Shown: positions 47,266 to 56,199, numbered from the stretch's first letter. The stretch: DNA of 64,000 nt from Eutreptiella sp. 'Long Island Sound 2002' (GCA_964036045.1 OZ038378.1:181970001-182034000); one strand, 5' to 3'. Translations and numbers: made by a program. Notes: generated by a model from the letters alone, not told the origin.

Positions 47266-48044
47266 GAATGACCGAGTAATTCGGCTGCCCAGCAGCTGCA
47301 CTTCGAAGACAAAGGGGTCCAGCCCATTTTGACCCAACCGCCCCTGAACACCCCCCCTCTCATAGACATTTGGGACAAAGGGGGGGGGGGGGCACAAACG
47401 AAGGGGGCGGGGGTTCTCTGAGTGAACAACAGCAACCCAGCCCCACCCTGCGACCATGCTCGACATCAAGCGTGGTCCCGCCCAATGGCTCTTGAGAACG
47501 GGAGTGGGGGGCTGGGGTGGGTTGGTGGGTGGGGGGGGGGGGGGGGCAGGGGCACAAATGGTCAGATTTGCAATCATGCAATGAGCTGCAGCCGTGCCAA
47601 GATGCTCTTTGCCCACAGTCCGATGGTGCGACAATTCCTTTGCGCCACGCAGGCAATGGTCTGTGATGAGGTACGGGCCAAGTGTCCACTGGGCACGGGT
47701 CAATGCATTGTGCTGGCCCGCCTGCTTTCTGCACTCGGCCTGTGTGCAGCACCGCCTCCAGGCTGATTCCACCGGACAGCAGGTGCCACAAAAAAGTATG
47801 CGGGGCTGTTTGTGAGCCCGTTGTACTGGGGAAGAGGTCCCCGTCTGACCGTCGTCTTCCGTGACTTGGGCCGTGACTTCAGCCGTGCTTGCGGAAGGGG
47901 GAAAGAGGGTGGGGGGGTGGGGGGTACGTCGCGGGGGGGCGGGGGGGGGCATGGGCCATTGATTTCTGCAAATTAGACTTTGCTGTGCCCCTCCGGACCG
48001 ATGACCGTCGCGGTGTCGCAGTGGTCACATGAGCTGCCGCTGGA

Positions 48045-49130
48045 ATGTGGCGGAGAGTGTCCGCCTTCGTCTTTGTGGCGCTGGGCCTTCTGGCCGCGTT
48101 GTCCCACGTCAGTCTGCGCCGCAGTCGCGGGGCGCGCCCCCGGCCCCCGGGTAGCCCCCCGCACCGGACCCCGCGTCCGACCGCCGGCGAACCGGAACCG
48201 CAGGCCGCGCGCGCCGCTGCAGCCGCGGCCGAACCGCGTGTCCTCCCCCGAACGACGGTGCAGACGGGCCGTTGGGTCGTGGTGGCCGCCATCCTGACGC
48301 CTGGGGCCCCGGCAGCGCAGGTGGGTCTCTTCGTGGCATCGGCGGTGGAGCACCTCGCGCCGTCTGTGGACGTGGTGCTGCTGACAGACCCCAGCGCTCG
48401 GGCTCAGTATCAGGCCTACCTGAACTCTGTCCCGCGCCCCAGCGCCGGCCCCCGGCTTTCTGCTTTTCCGGCGAACGGCGTGTGCGTGACGGAGCCCTGC
48501 GCCGAGCCTCTGGACACCCGGCGGTTTGCAGCGCACGCGCAGTTCTTGAGCCACTCCCCCGGGGCCTATGAGGCCGCGTTGCTGCTGAACGGCGGGGACG
48601 CCCACGTGCAGTCGGACCCCTTCCAGGCCCGCAGCCCCGCGCCCGGCGTTGCACTGTTCCCGGAGGCCATCCCCGTCGCAGATGCCGGGGTGTACCCCGC
48701 CCTGCGCGTCTGCTTTGCGACGCGCAGGCCCGGCCTCCCCAAGCGTGACGCCCTCAATGGCAAGGCCGTCATGGGTCATCCGGCTGCGCTCCTGAAGTTG
48801 CTCCGCGCGTACAACGACACGCTGTCGCGCGCGCGTGCGTGCCGCGCTGCAGCACCAAAGATCCTGCACAGCCTGGTGCTCCATTCCGTGGCCTACGCGC
48901 AGCCCCAGGCCGACCTTGGGCTCGCCGTCCTCGGCACTTCCGCGTCCCCTGTGGTCTCCCTCGCGCATTGGCCTTCCCGGACCCGCACATACGTTTGGAG
49001 TCCCAGCGCTCTTCAGGCGCTGAGGCGGTTTGGGCATACGCCGGCGGTGGTGCAGCACAGCGCGGAGCACCCCGCGCTGTTCTGCTACTGGCACCTTCGC
49101 CACGGCCTACCTCTGCCCCGTCACCCGCAG
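48045..49130 (+). CDS. Membrane-anchored GT-like/carbamoyltransferase fusion, exon 1 of 6 (975 aa total): signal anchor, stem, glycosyltransferase-like domain
   Basis: MWRRVSAFVFVALGLLAALSHV (basic residues then a hydrophobic run), a Pro/Arg-rich stem, then RRFAAHAQFL...YEAALLLNGGDAHVQSDPF and VVQHSAEHP. Donor ccgcag|gttgct, phase 0. Confidence 0.8.
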
Positions 49131-49415
49131 GTTGCTGTTTGGTGCTCATCGAGTGATAGGGTATTGCTATTGATTGCTCATGACGTGAGAGGTGTTGCCA
49201 TCGGGTGCTCATAAAGTGGCTGAACCAATTTTGTGTTGTTCTTACCTTGCCCCCCCCGTGTCCATCCCCCCCCCCCAGGGGGGGAACCGTCACTTGGCCC
49301 ATGAACAATAAGAAATCAATAGGAAATCACAGGCGCCGAAGACGCTGAAGAAAATTTTTAGTTGGGTTATACTAGAATTGGTTGGTCGGGAGTGGTGTAC
49401 GGTCCCCCCCCCCCA

Positions 49416-49449: not shown

Positions 49450-49626
49450 GGGATGGGGGGGGAACCGTCGTCCCTTGGGGGGGATGGACATGGGGGGGGG
49501 AAGGTACGGTGCTCGGGTGTTGCCATTCGGTGCTCTTAAGGGGATAGGGTGGCGTTATTCGGTGCTTGCAAAGTGATAGAATGTCGCTATTGGGTGCTCA
49601 TGCAGCGATGGGGTACTTTTTTTCAG

Positions 49627-49830
49627 GTCGTCGCTGCCTTGGGGCTCCCGCTGTTCGAGCATCTCGCCCAGCACCGCACCTCCCCGGGGGGCTGCCCGCG
49701 ACCAGTGCACGGCGGGCTCGTTTGCGGCCTGCCCGTTGGGTCGCGGCCCGGGTCTGCGTACAATCTGGCGATCTCTGCGGGGCCGCATGACTTCAACATC
49801 GCCGTCAGTGACGCCGATGGGCAGGTGCAG
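49627..49830 (+). CDS. Carbamoyltransferase fusion, exon 2
   Basis: Acceptor tttcag|gtc; AISAGPHDFNIAVSDADGQVQ resembles the family's N-terminal GIxxGxHDxxAAL..DG motif. Donor cag|gtattc; an alternative donor at 49824 is also in phase. Confidence 0.78.
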
Positions 49831-51890
49831 GTATTCGCTGCCGGGGCGCTATCTGGCGGGCAGGACCTGTTTTGCTTGCTGGGGGGCGTGTAGTTTGGCC
49901 CAAAACCGCCGTCGGTTGTCTCAGATCGGCCCTGATTAGCCTCCAGTTGGTGCCAAGTGAAGAGACCACTGTGGTCCCTCCGTGTGCCTAATTATGGGGC
50001 TGACTGCTGGACGGCTTGTCTAAGATACGGCCAGGTCCCAAATGAATACTCCCCTGGGTATGTTAGATGGCGTGTCTCGTGCGTGTCATTCAAACCTGCA
50101 GCATGGAAGCTGCAAAGCCATTTGTGTTGCATCCCTATTACCCATAACAAAGTGAATGGGAGCCAAAGGAGTGGAGGACAGTCCATCATAATCGAACCAA
50201 CATGACGTAGCAAGCAACCGAAAAAGCTGAAGCATCTTGGCCCAGAGGTGAATCCGACAATGGCTGTCACGCAGACAAATCCTTATCCAAACGCCCACCC
50301 GAACAAGCCTCCAAGCAGCCCAGACGTGCAGTATTGTTTCCCGTCTTCCCTTGGGCTGAGGCAAACATGCCAAATACACAATCAAACACATATTGTGTGC
50401 ACAACTGGTGCTTCGTCGTACATTGGGTGCGTGGTGTGCCCAAATGGTCAGATGGTCGCACTGCGCCCAAGGGAGCCCCTTTGTCTGCCATTGTCTGGGG
50501 GCGGCTTGCACATCCTCAAGGCGCCACAGGTCAGGCATAAGGCACACACACACACACCCTCCCCCTTGTGAAAGCACTGCCCAGGTCCACAAAAGCGACG
50601 GCCACGCAGGGTCATGTGCCCAGACCACGCCGTGCTTGCGCGGGGGAAGGAAGGGGCACAAATGGCGCTCGAACGTGGAGACCAATGGGCTGCGGCTGCT
50701 GGATGGACCCTGGTTGCTGGTACATGCTGGTGCCCATCACGCCATCGTATCGTGACCGCAAACACCATCGCCATAAAAGCAATGGTAGCACAGAGGTCCG
50801 GGTGCACGCAAGAAGACAGCGATGGCCGCCACCCTGCAGCATCACCACGGGAAACGTCTTCGTCACTGCAGCAGGTGGGCTGAGGAATCGCGATTCTGGG
50901 GCGTCCAGCACGCCACCAATGGTACCCCCTGGAAGCGTATCCCCTCTAGCTCGCGACGGTCACCCTGGACACCCTAGCTCATGGCATAGTCTGCCATGGC
51001 TCTTGGGAATCGAACTGCCGGCCATTCATCCGCGGCCCTGCTGCATGACCAGTGACACACGCACCTCCATAGGGAAAAGCGCGGTACCAGACCAATCCCC
51101 ACGCCGCACTTGAGAGACCTGTGCTAGACCCAGCGCCACCGTCGTTTTCCTGACTTTTGCCCGGGATCGAGACTGGGCAGGGGGGGGCAGTGGGAAGCTG
51201 CAAAATATTTACATACGGTGAATGGTACGGGATGGGGGAGGGGGAGAAGTTGGCCGCCAGCTGCCGTTGGCTGCCCAGCACTGAGGATATCCGACCACTG
51301 GTGCATGGGACGAAATGCTCTCTTTGTGTTGGCTTCTGGGTTGGTGGCCGGGCTGGTGGCTGGTTGGTGGGTGGGTGTTTGGCCGGGCTGTTGTACGCGG
51401 TGCTGATGGCGATGGTGGTGGCGAGGTTGTTGGGATGGGTCTCGGCTCGGAGGTGGTTGCAGTGAGGGGGATGGCAATGGTGAAGGTGATGGAGCTGGCG
51501 TTGCTGATGCCGACACCATTCACGGCATGCATATCCCGTGCACCCTTGTCTCACCGGTGAAAAAAGTTCCACCACGCCACCTTTATGCGGCGGGAGGACT
51601 CGTCCAATGCCACACGCCCCTGGGCAGCGGATCGGAAGTAGACTCAAGTTGGCTGGTTGCAGTGGCGATCGGTTATTCGCATTGCACCGCACCAGTGCCC
51701 CCGTGCGGCCCCACTGCCCCGCTCAAAGAGTCCGGGGCCCCAAGTGAAAGTCCATCCACCCCTCGGGCACCGACACCCCAGCGCTGCGGACAAGCCCCGC
51801 TTGCCTGCTCCTTCTCCATCTGGGGAGCCCCGAATCCCTCGGTCCATTGTCACGTGCCGTAGCGGCCGAACCACACGGCCTCGTTTGCAG

Positions 51891-52469
51891 GTGCACTTGG
51901 AGCTGGGGCATATTCTCGGGGGCAGCAAGAGCCTGGGGACCTGGAGCGGGGGCGGGGGCACGCGCTTCCACGGCTGGTGGCAGCGGCTGACAGCGCTGAT
52001 GGGGCCCTACACCGGGAACGCCACCGCCTCCTTCGGCGTGCTGGCGCTGGCCACCCACCAGCGCGCGGCCAACCTCGCCTTCCAGAACTGGGTCCGGCCT
52101 CGCGTGCCGCACCAGCAGTCGCTGCTGGTGCACCACCACCACGCTCACGCCTGCTACGCTTTCTTCGACTCCCCCTTCCTCGATGCCCTCATCCTGAGCG
52201 TCGACGGCGGCGGCGACGACGGGGCGTTCCGCGTGTTCGTGGGTTCCAAACGGGAGGGCGTCGTCGCACGGCTGGACGAGCCCCACCCGTCGCCTCTGGT
52301 GCTGGGGCAGGCCTACAAAGAGGCGGCCATGATCATGCCGGCCATTGCCTCCGAGTTCCTGCCCCAGTGCTCCAACTCCACCCTCTGCCTCAACGACGTC
52401 TCGCAGGAGTTGATGCATCTTGCCGCCTTAGGGACGACCCGCAAGGCGTGGGTGCCCCTCGTTACGCAG
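51891..52469 (+). CDS. Carbamoyltransferase fusion, exon 3 (Kae1-like domain)
   Basis: Acceptor ttgcag|gtg; VHHHHAHACYAFFDSPF and LILSVDGGGD are the NodU/CmcH HHxAH and DGxGD motifs. Donor cag|gtgcgc, phase 0. Confidence 0.9.
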
Positions 52470-52976
52470 GTGCGCCAGGATGGAGGGCCCCTCGAACACA
52501 GGGTCAACGGCGGTCCACCTCTCTTGGGCAAGTGCGCACGCCGATGGAGAGGGTGGCAATGCCGAGGCTAAAATCTGAAAAAAGATTCAATTTCTACTAA
52601 GAAAATGAACACTGCCAAAAAAGTCTAATATGTAATAAGCAAAAAAGTCTTTTTGTCCTTCAGTTATTGGTTTTACTTTCTAAAGCTAAATCGGTGTTCA
52701 GAAGTACGGCTACATACTGAGTTGTGCACTGGATGTGGAAGGTGGACCAGTAATTGATTGAGTGAGTGGGTGAGCGAGTGAGAAAGGGATACAAGTTGAA
52801 AGAAGTTCCTGTTCGGACGGGTTTTGTCATGGAGAGGGGCAGCTATTCACCTTTGCGCCCCCAAAAACGTATGTCAGTAAAATGTAAAGTTTTCTCGCCC
52901 GAAAAGCCACTTTCTCCTTTTACACAACCCTGTAGACTCCAACATGCCCCACCACGGCCCCCTCACATGTGCCCAG

Positions 52977-53148
52977 GTTCTGAAGGCGCCCACGCGGACC
53001 GCACAGCGGAAGCTGCTGATGCCTTTGGTTCCGAAGGTGAGGGAGAGCGTGCAGAGCGCGATGGACTACGCGCACACTGTGCAGCTGGTGCTGGAGCAGC
53101 TCGTGATCAGTCAGGCCGTGCGGCATATTGCCGCGGCAAATGCCACAG
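52977..53148 (+). CDS. Carbamoyltransferase fusion, exon 4
   Basis: Acceptor cccag|gtt; DYAHTVQLVLEQLV matches the family's D.AxxxQxxxE helix. Donor acag|gtgtgc, phase 1. Confidence 0.85.
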
Positions 53149-53400
53149 GTGTGCCTGCCATTAGAGAACCGCGGCAGAGGGCCGGGCTGCCCCCTCCCCG
53201 AACGCTGTGTCCCTATGGCTCGCAAAGGCTGTGGCCTCTGGACACCGTGTCTGGACGCCATGTCTTCGAGGGCATTGCACGGCTTTGGGATCGGGGATAT
53301 GCCTTCCTCCGGCCCTGAGGCGTTCTCGGATTGCCTCAGTTGAGGAGAGGCTCGGGCAGAAGCGAACCCGACGCTCCTGAGGACCAGCTGATTACGGCGC

Positions 53401-53600
53401 GCTGGGGCACTGGGGCACTGGGGCACTGGGGCACTGGGGCACTGGGGCACTGGGACACTGGGGCACTGGGGCACTGGGGCACTGGGGCACTGGGGCACTG
53501 GGGCACTGGGGCACTGGGACACTGGGGCACTGGGGCACTGGGGCACTGGGGCACTGGGGCACTGGGGCACTGGGGCACTGGGGCACTGGGACACTGGGGC
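53401..53600. repeat. (ggggcact)n 8-bp minisatellite in intron 4
   Basis: About 25 tandem units; source of the WGTGALGH/PVPQCPSA ORFs. Confidence 0.97.
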
Positions 53601-54407
53601 ATGACGCTCCACAGGGCGGAGCGGTCCAGACACGCAGTGCCCCCCGCCTCCCCTTTGCCATGGCCGGGCACAGGGCATGGGCTACTGCGGGGTTTTGCCC
53701 AAGTTTCGGGGGCTGGGGGAATGACGAGCACAAAAAACGGGGTGGGGGGCCCTTGGACCGCACCACAGCCAACAGGGGCTTGGCTGAGCCAGGCCCAGAT
53801 CTCGACCAATACTATGATCCTGACGGTTCTGCATAACCCCCCGGTCTCACTGTGGCTTCGGCGCAGGGCACTCAGGGCTCAGGACAGTGGCCCAGGGCCT
53901 GGGCACAGGGCAACGGCGCGGGCAGGGGCACAGGGCAGTGGCACAGCGCACTTTGACGATGTCGTACGGCGGATATTACCGAGTGGCACATGGGACAGGG
54001 CTGATTCCTCACGAAACTCAGCTCCCCTGCCGGACACTAGTGGCACGTCTGTTCTCCCCGTTCCCCCTCAGTTCTCCCCGTCCCCCACCGTTCCCCCCCG
54101 TTTCTCCACATTTACCTGCGGTTTCCCCAATATTTCCTGAGGTGTGTCTGATATAGTGTCTAGCGCCGACGGGCGATGTGAGCAGGCGATGGCATTGGCA
54201 TTGCATTCTCCTGGCCGTAAGCGCAATTTTTGCAATTTTTGTTGTCCGAGGCACAAGTGTGTGGCCGGGAAACGGGCGCACCGAGGCACTGAGACGTGAA
54301 GGTGTCACGCCGTTGGTCCGTTTGTGCAATACCCTTGGGATGTTGTGTGTTGGGGTGCCCGTCCGGCGCAACTCCCTCATTCCAAACTGCCTTCCATCGC
54401 ACTGCAG

Positions 54408-54883
54408 TCGGAGGGGTCTCCGGGATAGTTCTGACGGGCGGTACAGCGCTGAACGTGCGGCTCAGCCACGCCGTGTACAGTCATTTTCAGCTCCCGGTAC
54501 ACGTCCCGGCTGCTCCCCACGACGCAGGCCTCTCCCTGGGCATGTTATGGGCCGTGCAGCCGCCTCTGAGCGCCCCCGGCCACCCTTTTCTGGGGCTGCC
54601 GCTGCTGGACGCAGAAGGCCTGCCGGCGCACGTTGCGGCGCACGGCGCAACCCCTGTCGGTCCGGAAGGGATCGCCAAGCTGCTGCTCCAGGGACATATT
54701 GTGGGACTTGTCAGGGGCCGCATGGAGGTGGGCCTCAACGGACTGGGCCATCGCAGTATTTTGGCCATGCCCAACAACTCCACGACACGAGAGCGCATTT
54801 GTCGCCTGTTGGGGGTATCCGAACGGGGCTATCTTGGCGTTGCACTGCTGCAGTCTGCATTGCGCCTTGTCACTCAGGACAAG
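54408..54883 (+). CDS. Carbamoyltransferase fusion, exon 5
   Basis: Acceptor ctgcag|tc completes GTC (phase 1 match); LTGGTALNV, VPAAPHDAGLSLG and GRMEVGLNGLGHRSILA. Donor aag|gtatcc, phase 0. Confidence 0.9.
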
Positions 54884-55167
54884 GTATCCTGCGCCCTCTG
54901 TCCGCATGCCTTCCTGCCCATACACCAGGGCGCTCCTTCGTCATCTCGTTTTTTCTTTGTTCTTTTGTTTGCGCTCCTGAAACAACCGCTCAATCGCCGT
55001 CGGTTACCCTCCAATCGCCGTCGGTTACCGCCCGAAAACCACTGCGTGTGGGGTCACCCTTTTTCCTCTTTTTTTTTTTTTTGGATTGAGAGCACCCTAC
55101 CGTACGCCCTTGTACATTATGCTTGTGCCGATGTACACGTACACCCTTGTGGACTCTTCTCATGCAG

Positions 55168-55578
55168 GTCACATCTCCGTGCATGTCTTCGGTGGTGCTG
55201 GTGGACCCTGCTGCTCGGGGGCACTTCTCAGGGGCGGTGTTGCATGACGGTACGATGCTGGTACAGACAATACAGCGCACCTTCGATGACTATTTTCATG
55301 AGATTTTGGAAAGGGTCTCTGATCTTCGTGGTCCTTTGAGGTCCAAGCCGCACGCCAGCCCTATCAACAACGTTCCCTCGAAGCCAAATCATGCCGGAGA
55401 CCACCAATCCCACGCTACATTCCCTGCAGTTTTAAACGTGCCCTTCCGGCGGCGGACCGCAGGGCTGGCCACCCACGTGCACAAAGTGCTAGAATTTCTG
55501 ACACTCCCAACTGGGCCAGATTTTGTGGTCGTGGAGGGTTGGCTGTTCTCAAGAAGGGCCAATGCTGACCCCAACTGA
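55168..55578 (+). CDS. Carbamoyltransferase fusion, exon 6 (YrdC-like C-terminal part)
   Basis: Acceptor atgcag|gtc; SPCM, GAVLHDGTMLVQTI and AVLNVPF correspond to the family's SPFM, AVxHVDGTARxQT and LNTSFN motifs. Stop TGA at 55576-55578. Confidence 0.85.
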   Translation, partial: VTSPCMSSVVLVDPAARGHFSGAVLHDGTMLVQTIQRTFDDYFHEILERVSDLRGPLRSKPHASPINNVPSKPNHAGDHQSHATFPAVLNVPFRRRTAGLATHVHKVLEFLTLPTGPDFVVVEGWLFSRRANADPN

Positions 55579-56199
55579 ATACTGCCCTCCCTGTTGGCGT
55601 TAGCTAGACTGTGCGTGTGGCTGCCTCCAGGGCCCAACACGTTACCGAGACACAACAGATGTATTTGGGTGGTTATCTTGGTGATCATCGGGTGCCCACC
55701 GAGAAAAGTGCCCAGTGAACTCGAAGAGGAACCAGAGAGACACGAAGCCGATAATGATCGCTCAGTTGCCTTGGAGTGCTCAGAAACGGTGGACCACACA
55801 TGCAGCATTGTACGCCTCCTGTATCATTCATTGAACCTATCTTGAAAGCACCATGGAGAGCCAAACAACGCACTCATCGGGCGCTGAGACATGGTATCTT
55901 CAGACAGGGTGCAATTGGTGCAAGAACAAAAGTGACTCCATGACCTGTCGCGGAGGGACAGGATTGCATTTTCTGGGATGGGCGGAAAAGGTCCTGGGAA
56001 CCCGGTTTTTTTAGCCTGATTTAGGGCCAGGAGGGAGGGGATGAGGGTCCACGAGAGGCAGGGACGGGGCCCAGTGGGAAGGGCTGCTGGAATGAAATTT
56101 AAGCAAAAACCTGCTGCCCACGTATGTTCCCGTGGTTTTCTATGACCCAGCAGGGGCACGGCTGCTGCAGGGGCAGCATGTCGCTGCTCATCTTTTCTG

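Follow-up and report, generated by a model that had tools for sequence, protein, structure and literature searches.

TobZ-type enzymes are the textbook fusion of two ancient modules, YrdC and Kae1, which pass an unstable adenylate between them. In canonical class III carbamoyltransferases, the C-terminal YrdC-like domain uses carbamoyl phosphate and adenosine triphosphate (ATP) to form carbamoyl-adenosine monophosphate (carbamoyl-AMP), and the N-terminal Kae1-like domain, which has a catalytic His and a metal bound by two His and two Asp, carbamoylates a hydroxyl group of the substrate. In the pathway to N6-threonylcarbamoyladenosine (t6A), a Kae1-type metal site uses threonylcarbamoyl-adenosine monophosphate (threonylcarbamoyl-AMP) that is made by a separate YrdC-type protein. 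GdmN and TobZ have been described as working in two steps: the YrdC-like domain produces carbamoyl-AMP, and carbamoyl transfer then takes place at an iron site in the Kae1-like domain, where a histidine acts as the base, H27 being the general base in GdmN (PMC9633730). In the class II protein HypF, too, a single chain combines YrdC-like and Kae1-like domains, and the reaction goes through a carbamoyl-AMP intermediate (PMC9633730). Here we describe a homologue of these enzymes in a 64,000-nucleotide stretch of DNA from Eutreptiella sp. 'Long Island Sound 2002' (GCA_964036045.1 OZ038378.1:181970001-182034000; hereafter, the window). Positions 54408-55578 of the window correspond to the last two exons and one intron of a split gene that is homologous to carbamoyltransferases of the TobZ/NodU/CmcH type.

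The explanation that we favour as a whole, with a probability of about 0.6, is that this is an intact gene of a euglenid family in which the YrdC-like module is dead and the transfer half is active, acting on a donor from outside the protein. The euglenid clade would have kept the YrdC-Kae1 fusion but switched off the module that makes the donor.

All of the motifs quoted in the original prediction for this gene were found on the plus strand (the strand of every feature below unless stated otherwise), at or near the places given for them. Alignment to canonical enzymes also confirmed its central claim, that the transfer motifs are intact and the adenylate-forming motifs are gone. The YrdC-like domain includes RGRMEVGLNGLGHRS (54713-54757), and where canonical enzymes have GPRALGxRS the window gene has GLNGLGHRS, in which just the L-G-x-R-S part is kept. 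The sequence LLGVSERGYLGVA (54806-54844) replaces K-x-R-E-x-x-R-P-F-A-P, with LGVSERGYLGV falling at the (N)xxKxRExxRPxAP columns. LHDGTMLVQT (55240-55269) replaces HxDGTARxQT, and the alignment of VLHDGTMLVQ with xxHxDGTARxQ places the losses at the His and the Arg; LNVPFR (55432-55449) replaces LNTSFN, with the Thr, the Ser and the second Asn lost. Because K-x-R-E-x-x-R-P, H-x-D-G-T-x-R and N-T-S-F-N are absent from the YrdC-like domain, synthesis of carbamoyl-AMP by the window-gene family is not expected from its sequences.

The same catalytic columns are degraded across the clade of relatives, for which 54 canonical sequences served as the reference. The canonical residue is found in 7% of the clade at K391, 28% at R393, 5% at E394, 6% at H439, 28% at R445, 5% at T476, 16% at S477 and 0% at N479, and these former catalytic columns vary freely, with no replacement consensus. 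The first YrdC block, RGR...LGxR, is partly conserved (G359, 100%; G369, 95%; R371, 95%), and conservation persists in the fold-forming blocks SPy.sf, QTV, dpWLh.lL, P.Ll, dAL and vvVE..LF. When the clade was aligned with the canonical enzymes by hhalign, the probability was 100% across 508 columns; the C domain had no gap, and there was no register shift. Because this alignment is gap-free in the C domain, motif blocks included, the catalytic residues are not hidden at shifted positions, an outcome that the original prediction had allowed for. Mean pairwise identity in the N domain is 29% among canonical enzymes and 31% within the clade; in the C domain, the values are 44% and 28.5%, respectively, a pattern that shows an apparent shift or loss of constraint in the C domain of the clade. 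The positions concerned have also attracted mutagenesis: according to the entry titles, deposited variant structures of TobZ carry H14N, K443A and S530A, of which K443 and S530 fall in the K-x-R-E and N-T-S-F-N motifs and H14 in the Kae1-like half. Judged by these alignments, the YrdC-like half is one that has lost its catalytic residues yet kept its fold-forming residues.

When aligned to canonical enzymes, the Kae1-like half of the window gene keeps the N-terminal His, HHxxH, DGGGD, GGxxLN and PxDxG. The His of GPHD (49780-49791) corresponds to the catalytic base that is changed in TobZ H14N; HHHHAH (52131-52148) and DGGGDD (52203-52220) are metal-site motifs; and GGTALN (54437-54454) and PHDAG (54515-54529) also lie in the Kae1-like domain. 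The retained metal site consists of two His and two Asp. GPHD aligns to the 'HD' column of the family, at which the His is present in 16/16 clade members that cover it. Across the clade there is little or no variation at the catalytic His, the two His of HHxxH and the Asp residues of DGGGD and PxDxG, and G267, G268, N272, D295 and G301, which occupy columns invariant in the 54 canonical sequences, are 100% canonical. The window copy agrees with all of the family-conserved columns that we tabulated, and its HHHHAH and DGGGDD align to the metal-site columns of the family. Judging by these residues, the transfer half seems to be fully functional.

At least 18 full-length relatives share the pattern of kept Kae1-like and lost YrdC-like motifs. 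A word search with exon 54410-54883 found one relative, P0001, which is 43-49% identical and also has an eroded C domain; protein identity between the window gene and its closest relatives is 43-57%. A full scan with a profile of the window exon and P0001 returned 4,850 matches, and about 30 of the best 150 representatives keep HHxxH, GGxxLN and PxDxG and lack KxRExxRP, HxDGTxR and NTSFN. All seven eroded members that carry a species name are euglenid: two from Euglena longa, two from Eutreptiella gymnastica, and one each from Urceolus cornutus, Jenningsia fusiforme and Entosiphon sulcatum. Because these named members, all seven, come from transcriptomes, the family is expressed. Of the unnamed members, all seven that we looked up come from the Euglena assembly ERZ25074135, each on its own contig, and six are uninterrupted open reading frames (ORFs) of 547-711 codons. 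This assembly has diverged repeats in common with the window and contains a sequence identical to the Euglena spliced leader, which we treat as a lead. The view that the window gene is not a product of simple decay was borne out, as all close relatives share the loss; relatives with canonical motifs and relaxation in the window copy only would have been the opposite result.

In a maximum-likelihood tree, in which the window exons were entered one at a time as separate rows, 21 rows of eroded sequences cluster in a single group (Shimodaira-Hasegawa approximate likelihood ratio test (SH-aLRT) support, 83) that includes window exons A and C, with exon A beside Eutreptiella P0113 (support, 85). 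The clade is large, fast-evolving and multi-copy, and 11/16 members have an N-terminal hydrophobic signal or anchor. By homology, this is a euglenid-specific family descended from class III carbamoyltransferases of the TobZ/NodU/CmcH type, and a single ancestral loss of the YrdC catalytic residues, before the sampled euglenids diverged, is likely. A literature search found no paper on an eroded carbamoyltransferase family in euglenids, and the database labels of family members are 'uncharacterized' or 'carbamoyltransferase domain-containing' only; the eroded euglenid family is previously undescribed.

The fold was modelled with AlphaFold for a paralogue, P0008. The model is confident throughout, including the C domain (predicted local distance difference test (pLDDT), 91; predicted template modelling (pTM) score, 0.91), and it matches TobZ, GdmN, NovN and VtdB at full length over both domains, with template modelling (TM) scores of 0.72-0.77. 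The clade profile matches NovN and TobZ at ~1e-59. The predicted structure of P0008 is that of the complete TobZ two-domain fold, retained in the family.

The boundaries of the analysed segment fit a split gene, as 54408 coincides with a CAG/TC splice acceptor (slashes mark exon borders) and 55578 is the final base of a stop codon. Around 54408-55578 the plus strand carries ORF pieces of 100-390 codons and no long ORF, and the carbamoyltransferase blocks appear in order once these are translated. A five-exon model with GT-AG borders gives one open frame of ~620 codons, for which frame continuity and the stop count of the concatenation were computed. The frame 'intact over 975 codons' of the original prediction did not hold up: the longest single ORFs in the region have 304-389 codons, and a length of 975 would need an upstream ORF to be spliced onto the ~620-codon model. 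A family hidden Markov model (HMM) built from close relatives of the window gene is collinear on the window over positions 25-550 of 554, with no second match in any other frame or strand of the window.

The first core exon is predicted at 49606..49830 (acceptor tcatgcag/CG, donor CAG/gtattc), with a weak family-HMM match at 49678-49839 (HMM 25-53). The Kae1-like exon with the metal-site motifs, at 51891..52469, has GT-AG borders and matches HMM positions 74-239 at 51963-52475 (E = 1.8e-36). It is followed by a short Kae1-like exon at 52977..53148 (acceptor cccag/GTT, donor ACAG/gtgtgc) that contains DYAHTVQLVLEQ..., the 'rDyAAtvQ..LE' block of the family, and matches HMM 246-292 at 52992-53144 (E = 8e-4). 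Alignment to TobZ identifies 54408..54883 as the exon in which the Kae1-like domain ends and the YrdC-like domain begins (HMM 285-449 at 54395-54889; E = 1.1e-51). The remaining YrdC-like domain is in the last exon, 55168..55578, which by alignment to GdmN has SPCM and then LHDGTMLVQT, and which ends with the stop codon at 55576-55578; its HMM matches are at 55165-55326 (HMM 447-500; E = 2e-6) and 55411-55563 (HMM 500-550; E = 9e-7). Between them lies an in-frame insert of 29 codons, PLRSKPH...SHAT (55333..55419); all 19 relatives have a gap there, and at HMM position 500 the match breaks off at 55326 and resumes at 55411. The insert may form a surface loop, or it may be a non-conventional intron that went unrecognised. 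In Pfam, Carbam_trans_N matches weakly (0.004) on the ORF 51657-52571, and Carbam_trans_C matches at 3e-9 on the ORF holding 54408-54883 and at 1e-4 on the ORF holding 55168-55578. TobZ and GdmN are the top solved-structure matches of exon 54410-54883. These matches place the homology well beyond chance. The exons have a coding-like pattern of GC content by codon position, with third-position GC (GC3) of 0.61-0.91 (0.91 in exon 51891-52469 and a lower 0.61 in the last exon), and the introns are flat.

Four runs compared with 49620-55619 yielded genomic contigs, which extend across the introns and contain no splice joints of the window gene, and the run presumed to be RNA yielded nothing. The sole difference within exon C in the DNA contig of a second sample, at position 55527, is synonymous. 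From its sequence, the window gene looks intact and intron-split.

We propose that the YrdC-like half may survive in a structural role, as the module needed to complete the two-domain architecture. The Kae1-like half would still be a metal-dependent transferase and would take an activated donor, probably of the adenylate type, that is made elsewhere. The supply of this donor could resemble that of Kae1/TsaD, which receives threonylcarbamoyl-AMP from a separate Sua5/TsaC.

Several points weigh against this reading. The mechanism with a donor in trans is one that we infer purely by analogy, and we found no motif-complete paralogue in a euglenid that could be the source of carbamoyl-AMP; the nearest three sequences with complete motifs belong to metagenomes or an unlabelled run and not to assembly ERZ25074135. 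Motif-complete relatives that bear signal peptides exist in other eukaryote-like sources. In the transfer half, the E-R of 'ELER', which is invariant in canonical N domains, is not kept in the clade, so that this half too is somewhat changed, to judge by that loss. Support for the eroded group in the tree is only moderate and the branches are long, and window exon B, which has the most conserved blocks, floats among the canonical sequences. The exon borders are predicted only, and non-conventional introns also occur in Euglena. No transcript-derived protein of the window gene was found in word searches (with the exon, and with the family alignment including the window exons) or in the full scan; the runs gave DNA contigs only, so the absence of RNA for the window copy is uninformative.

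A broader proposal, which we hold only tentatively, is that of a 're-split' fused enzyme: signal-bearing transferases of the Kae1 type that retain a fossil YrdC domain, receive their donor in trans (carbamoyl-AMP, another acyl-adenylate or ATP) and modify glycans, lipids or proteins that are secreted or at the surface. As a cause of the motif loss, location in the secretory lumen was considered and rejected; secretory location alone does not explain the loss, because motif-complete relatives also carry signal peptides. P0007, P0015, P0028, P0030, P0057 and P0148 are motif-complete carbamoyltransferases of 765-1320 residues with a signal-peptide-like N-terminus and long N-terminal extensions. 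The combination of complete motifs and signal peptides suggests that complete enzymes of the TobZ type may be present in the secretory pathway of other eukaryotes.

It is unlikely, in our view, that the whole protein is non-catalytic, with both halves forming a binding or scaffold module (lectin-like or a pseudoenzyme) in the secretory pathway. Such a role would suit a protein in which one half is clearly dead and the N domain has lost the canonical E-R of 'ELER' too, and the family is large and fast-evolving, as is often the case for families of binding proteins. However, the nucleotide-site GGxxLN is retained and the N domain of the clade is as conserved as that of canonical enzymes. A purely lectin or scaffold role is made less likely because the catalytic His and the metal ligands are conserved, invariantly or nearly so, across the clade.

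We also think it improbable that the window copy is a silent or decaying pseudogene in an otherwise functional family. Its five exons are open, in one frame and with GT-AG borders; the family HMM is covered fully and collinearly; the family-conserved columns are matched, with the metal-site motifs aligned to those of the family; and the lone difference in the other sample is synonymous. Against these stand the 29-codon insert, which is unique to this copy, the lower GC3 of the last exon (0.61), introns full of repeats, and the lack of both an RNA run with the window copy and a matching transcript-derived protein, but the runs gave DNA contigs only, which makes the RNA part of this uninformative.

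A re-tooled adenylation site, in which the YrdC-like domain still makes carbamoyl-AMP or another acyl-adenylate through non-canonical residues, seems very unlikely. The lost columns are without a replacement consensus, which would be unexpected for a re-tooled active site, and TobZ K443A and S530A were made, as the entry titles indicate, to probe exactly such positions; the kept fold and the partly conserved RGR...LGxR block are what speaks for it. Least credible of all is that an incorrect exon model has produced the erosion artificially, with canonical motifs in missed or read-through exons: the non-conventional introns of Euglena and an alternative GT donor (GGG/gtatcc) near 54818, just 5' of the eroded K-x-R-E position, would permit it, but it was tested and rejected, as the family HMM runs ungapped through 54395-54889 and 55165-55563, lengths match those of relatives, other frames and strands of the window hold no second match, and intronless paralogues and transcript-derived relatives have the same erosion.

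Upstream of the carbamoyltransferase exons, an ORF of 389 codons (48045..49214) has its own ATG and stop codon, a strong N-terminal signal anchor (MWRRVSAFVFVALGLLAALSHV) and a coding-like GC content by codon position (0.74/0.58/0.79). The original prediction had made this an N-terminal glycosyltransferase-like domain of the same protein. The NGGD that it named is indeed present, at 48588-48599, where a DxD-type motif would be expected for a glycosyltransferase; the glycosyltransferase label itself found no backing in Pfam or word searches, and the domain occurs in no family member. The ORF had no Pfam match, no word-search match and no similarity to any member of the carbamoyltransferase family. 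Its look-alikes by language model, a weak lead, are stand-alone eukaryotic hypothetical proteins of 323-465 amino acids, and in one distant look-alike cluster (rank 19) 10% of members have Nucleotid_trans. Near the end of the ORF there are in-phase GT donors, such as GAC/GTGAGA at 49185, as well as an in-phase acceptor at 49605/49606, which makes a fusion of this ORF to the carbamoyltransferase exons possible on splice-site grounds. In transcript-derived family members, the signal peptide directly precedes the carbamoyltransferase core, and none has the domain of the upstream ORF. The stretch 47973-49214 is 66% GC, and a 376-codon ORF on the minus strand (47973-49103) overlaps the 389-codon ORF on the plus strand; because long ORFs overlap on both strands, ORF length is weak evidence here.

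The introns are rich in repeats. In the intron between the last two exons, 54960-55030 contains a tandemly duplicated short motif, about CAATCGCCGTCGGTTACC, whose abundance in the genome is extreme: the word depth of contigs is ~14,000-53,000 there, compared with 10-40 on either side, and at 54990-55030 many contigs stop or turn back on themselves. The large intron contains, at 53400-53600 and 53820-54220, repeats of two kinds: a (GGGGCACT)n tandem array of ~200 bp, which yields spurious repeat ORFs on both strands, and, beside it, a dispersed repeat with a depth of 600-2,300.

Gene structure differs within the family: six paralogues (L002, L003, L004, L008, L009 and L010) are intronless, and the window gene and the gene of P0001 are intron-split. 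A search for the spliced leader within 1.5-3 kb of the six intronless paralogues found none, a result that neither establishes nor refutes a retrogene origin. An intron of P0001 in ERZ25074135 (L001:9316-9351) contains an exact 24-base Euglena spliced leader after a G-run, followed by non-GT sequence. This element is not a gene for the spliced-leader RNA, and resembles the 5' end of a trans-spliced RNA that has been retro-copied.

The dead-module state would be older than the divergence of Entosiphon and Euglena, and it spans many paralogues. Such a family provides a natural set of pseudo-domains that could separate the YrdC residues needed for the fold from those needed for chemistry, and it raises a testable question, namely the source of the donor and the target that is modified. 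The label 'carbamoyltransferase' on euglenid family members is probably wrong as to activity.

Described systems offer three comparisons, one of which is HypF. Its structures 3tsq and 3tsp are weak fold matches to the P0008 model, but HypF has the opposite domain order, additional acylphosphatase and zinc-finger domains, and intact adenylation motifs, and it is not a close relative. The likeness to Kae1/TsaD/Qri7 with Sua5/TsaC is an analogy of mechanism only and not one of membership: TsaD/Kae1 structures match only the N domain of the P0008 model (TM score, ~0.37), whereas its best matches are carbamoyltransferases over both domains, and, unlike Kae1/TsaD/Qri7, the window family retains a dead YrdC-like domain in the same chain, has a secretory signal, and is not known to have tRNA-binding partners or a KEOPS/TsaB/TsaE setting. 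The closest likeness is to the class III enzymes (TobZ/NodU/NolO/CmcH/GdmN/NovN/VtdB; PF02543 and PF16861), with which the window family shares the architecture of a Kae1-like and then a YrdC-like domain, the catalytic His, the HHxxH/DGxGD/PxDxG metal site and GGxxLN. It differs from them in being without K-x-R-E-x-x-R-P, H-x-D-G-T-x-R and N-T-S-F-N, and in being eukaryotic, mostly equipped with a signal peptide or anchor and represented by many paralogues per genome. By descent, the window gene is a member of the Carbam_trans_N/C superfamily; because three defining catalytic motifs fail, it should not be classified by activity as a carbamoyltransferase.

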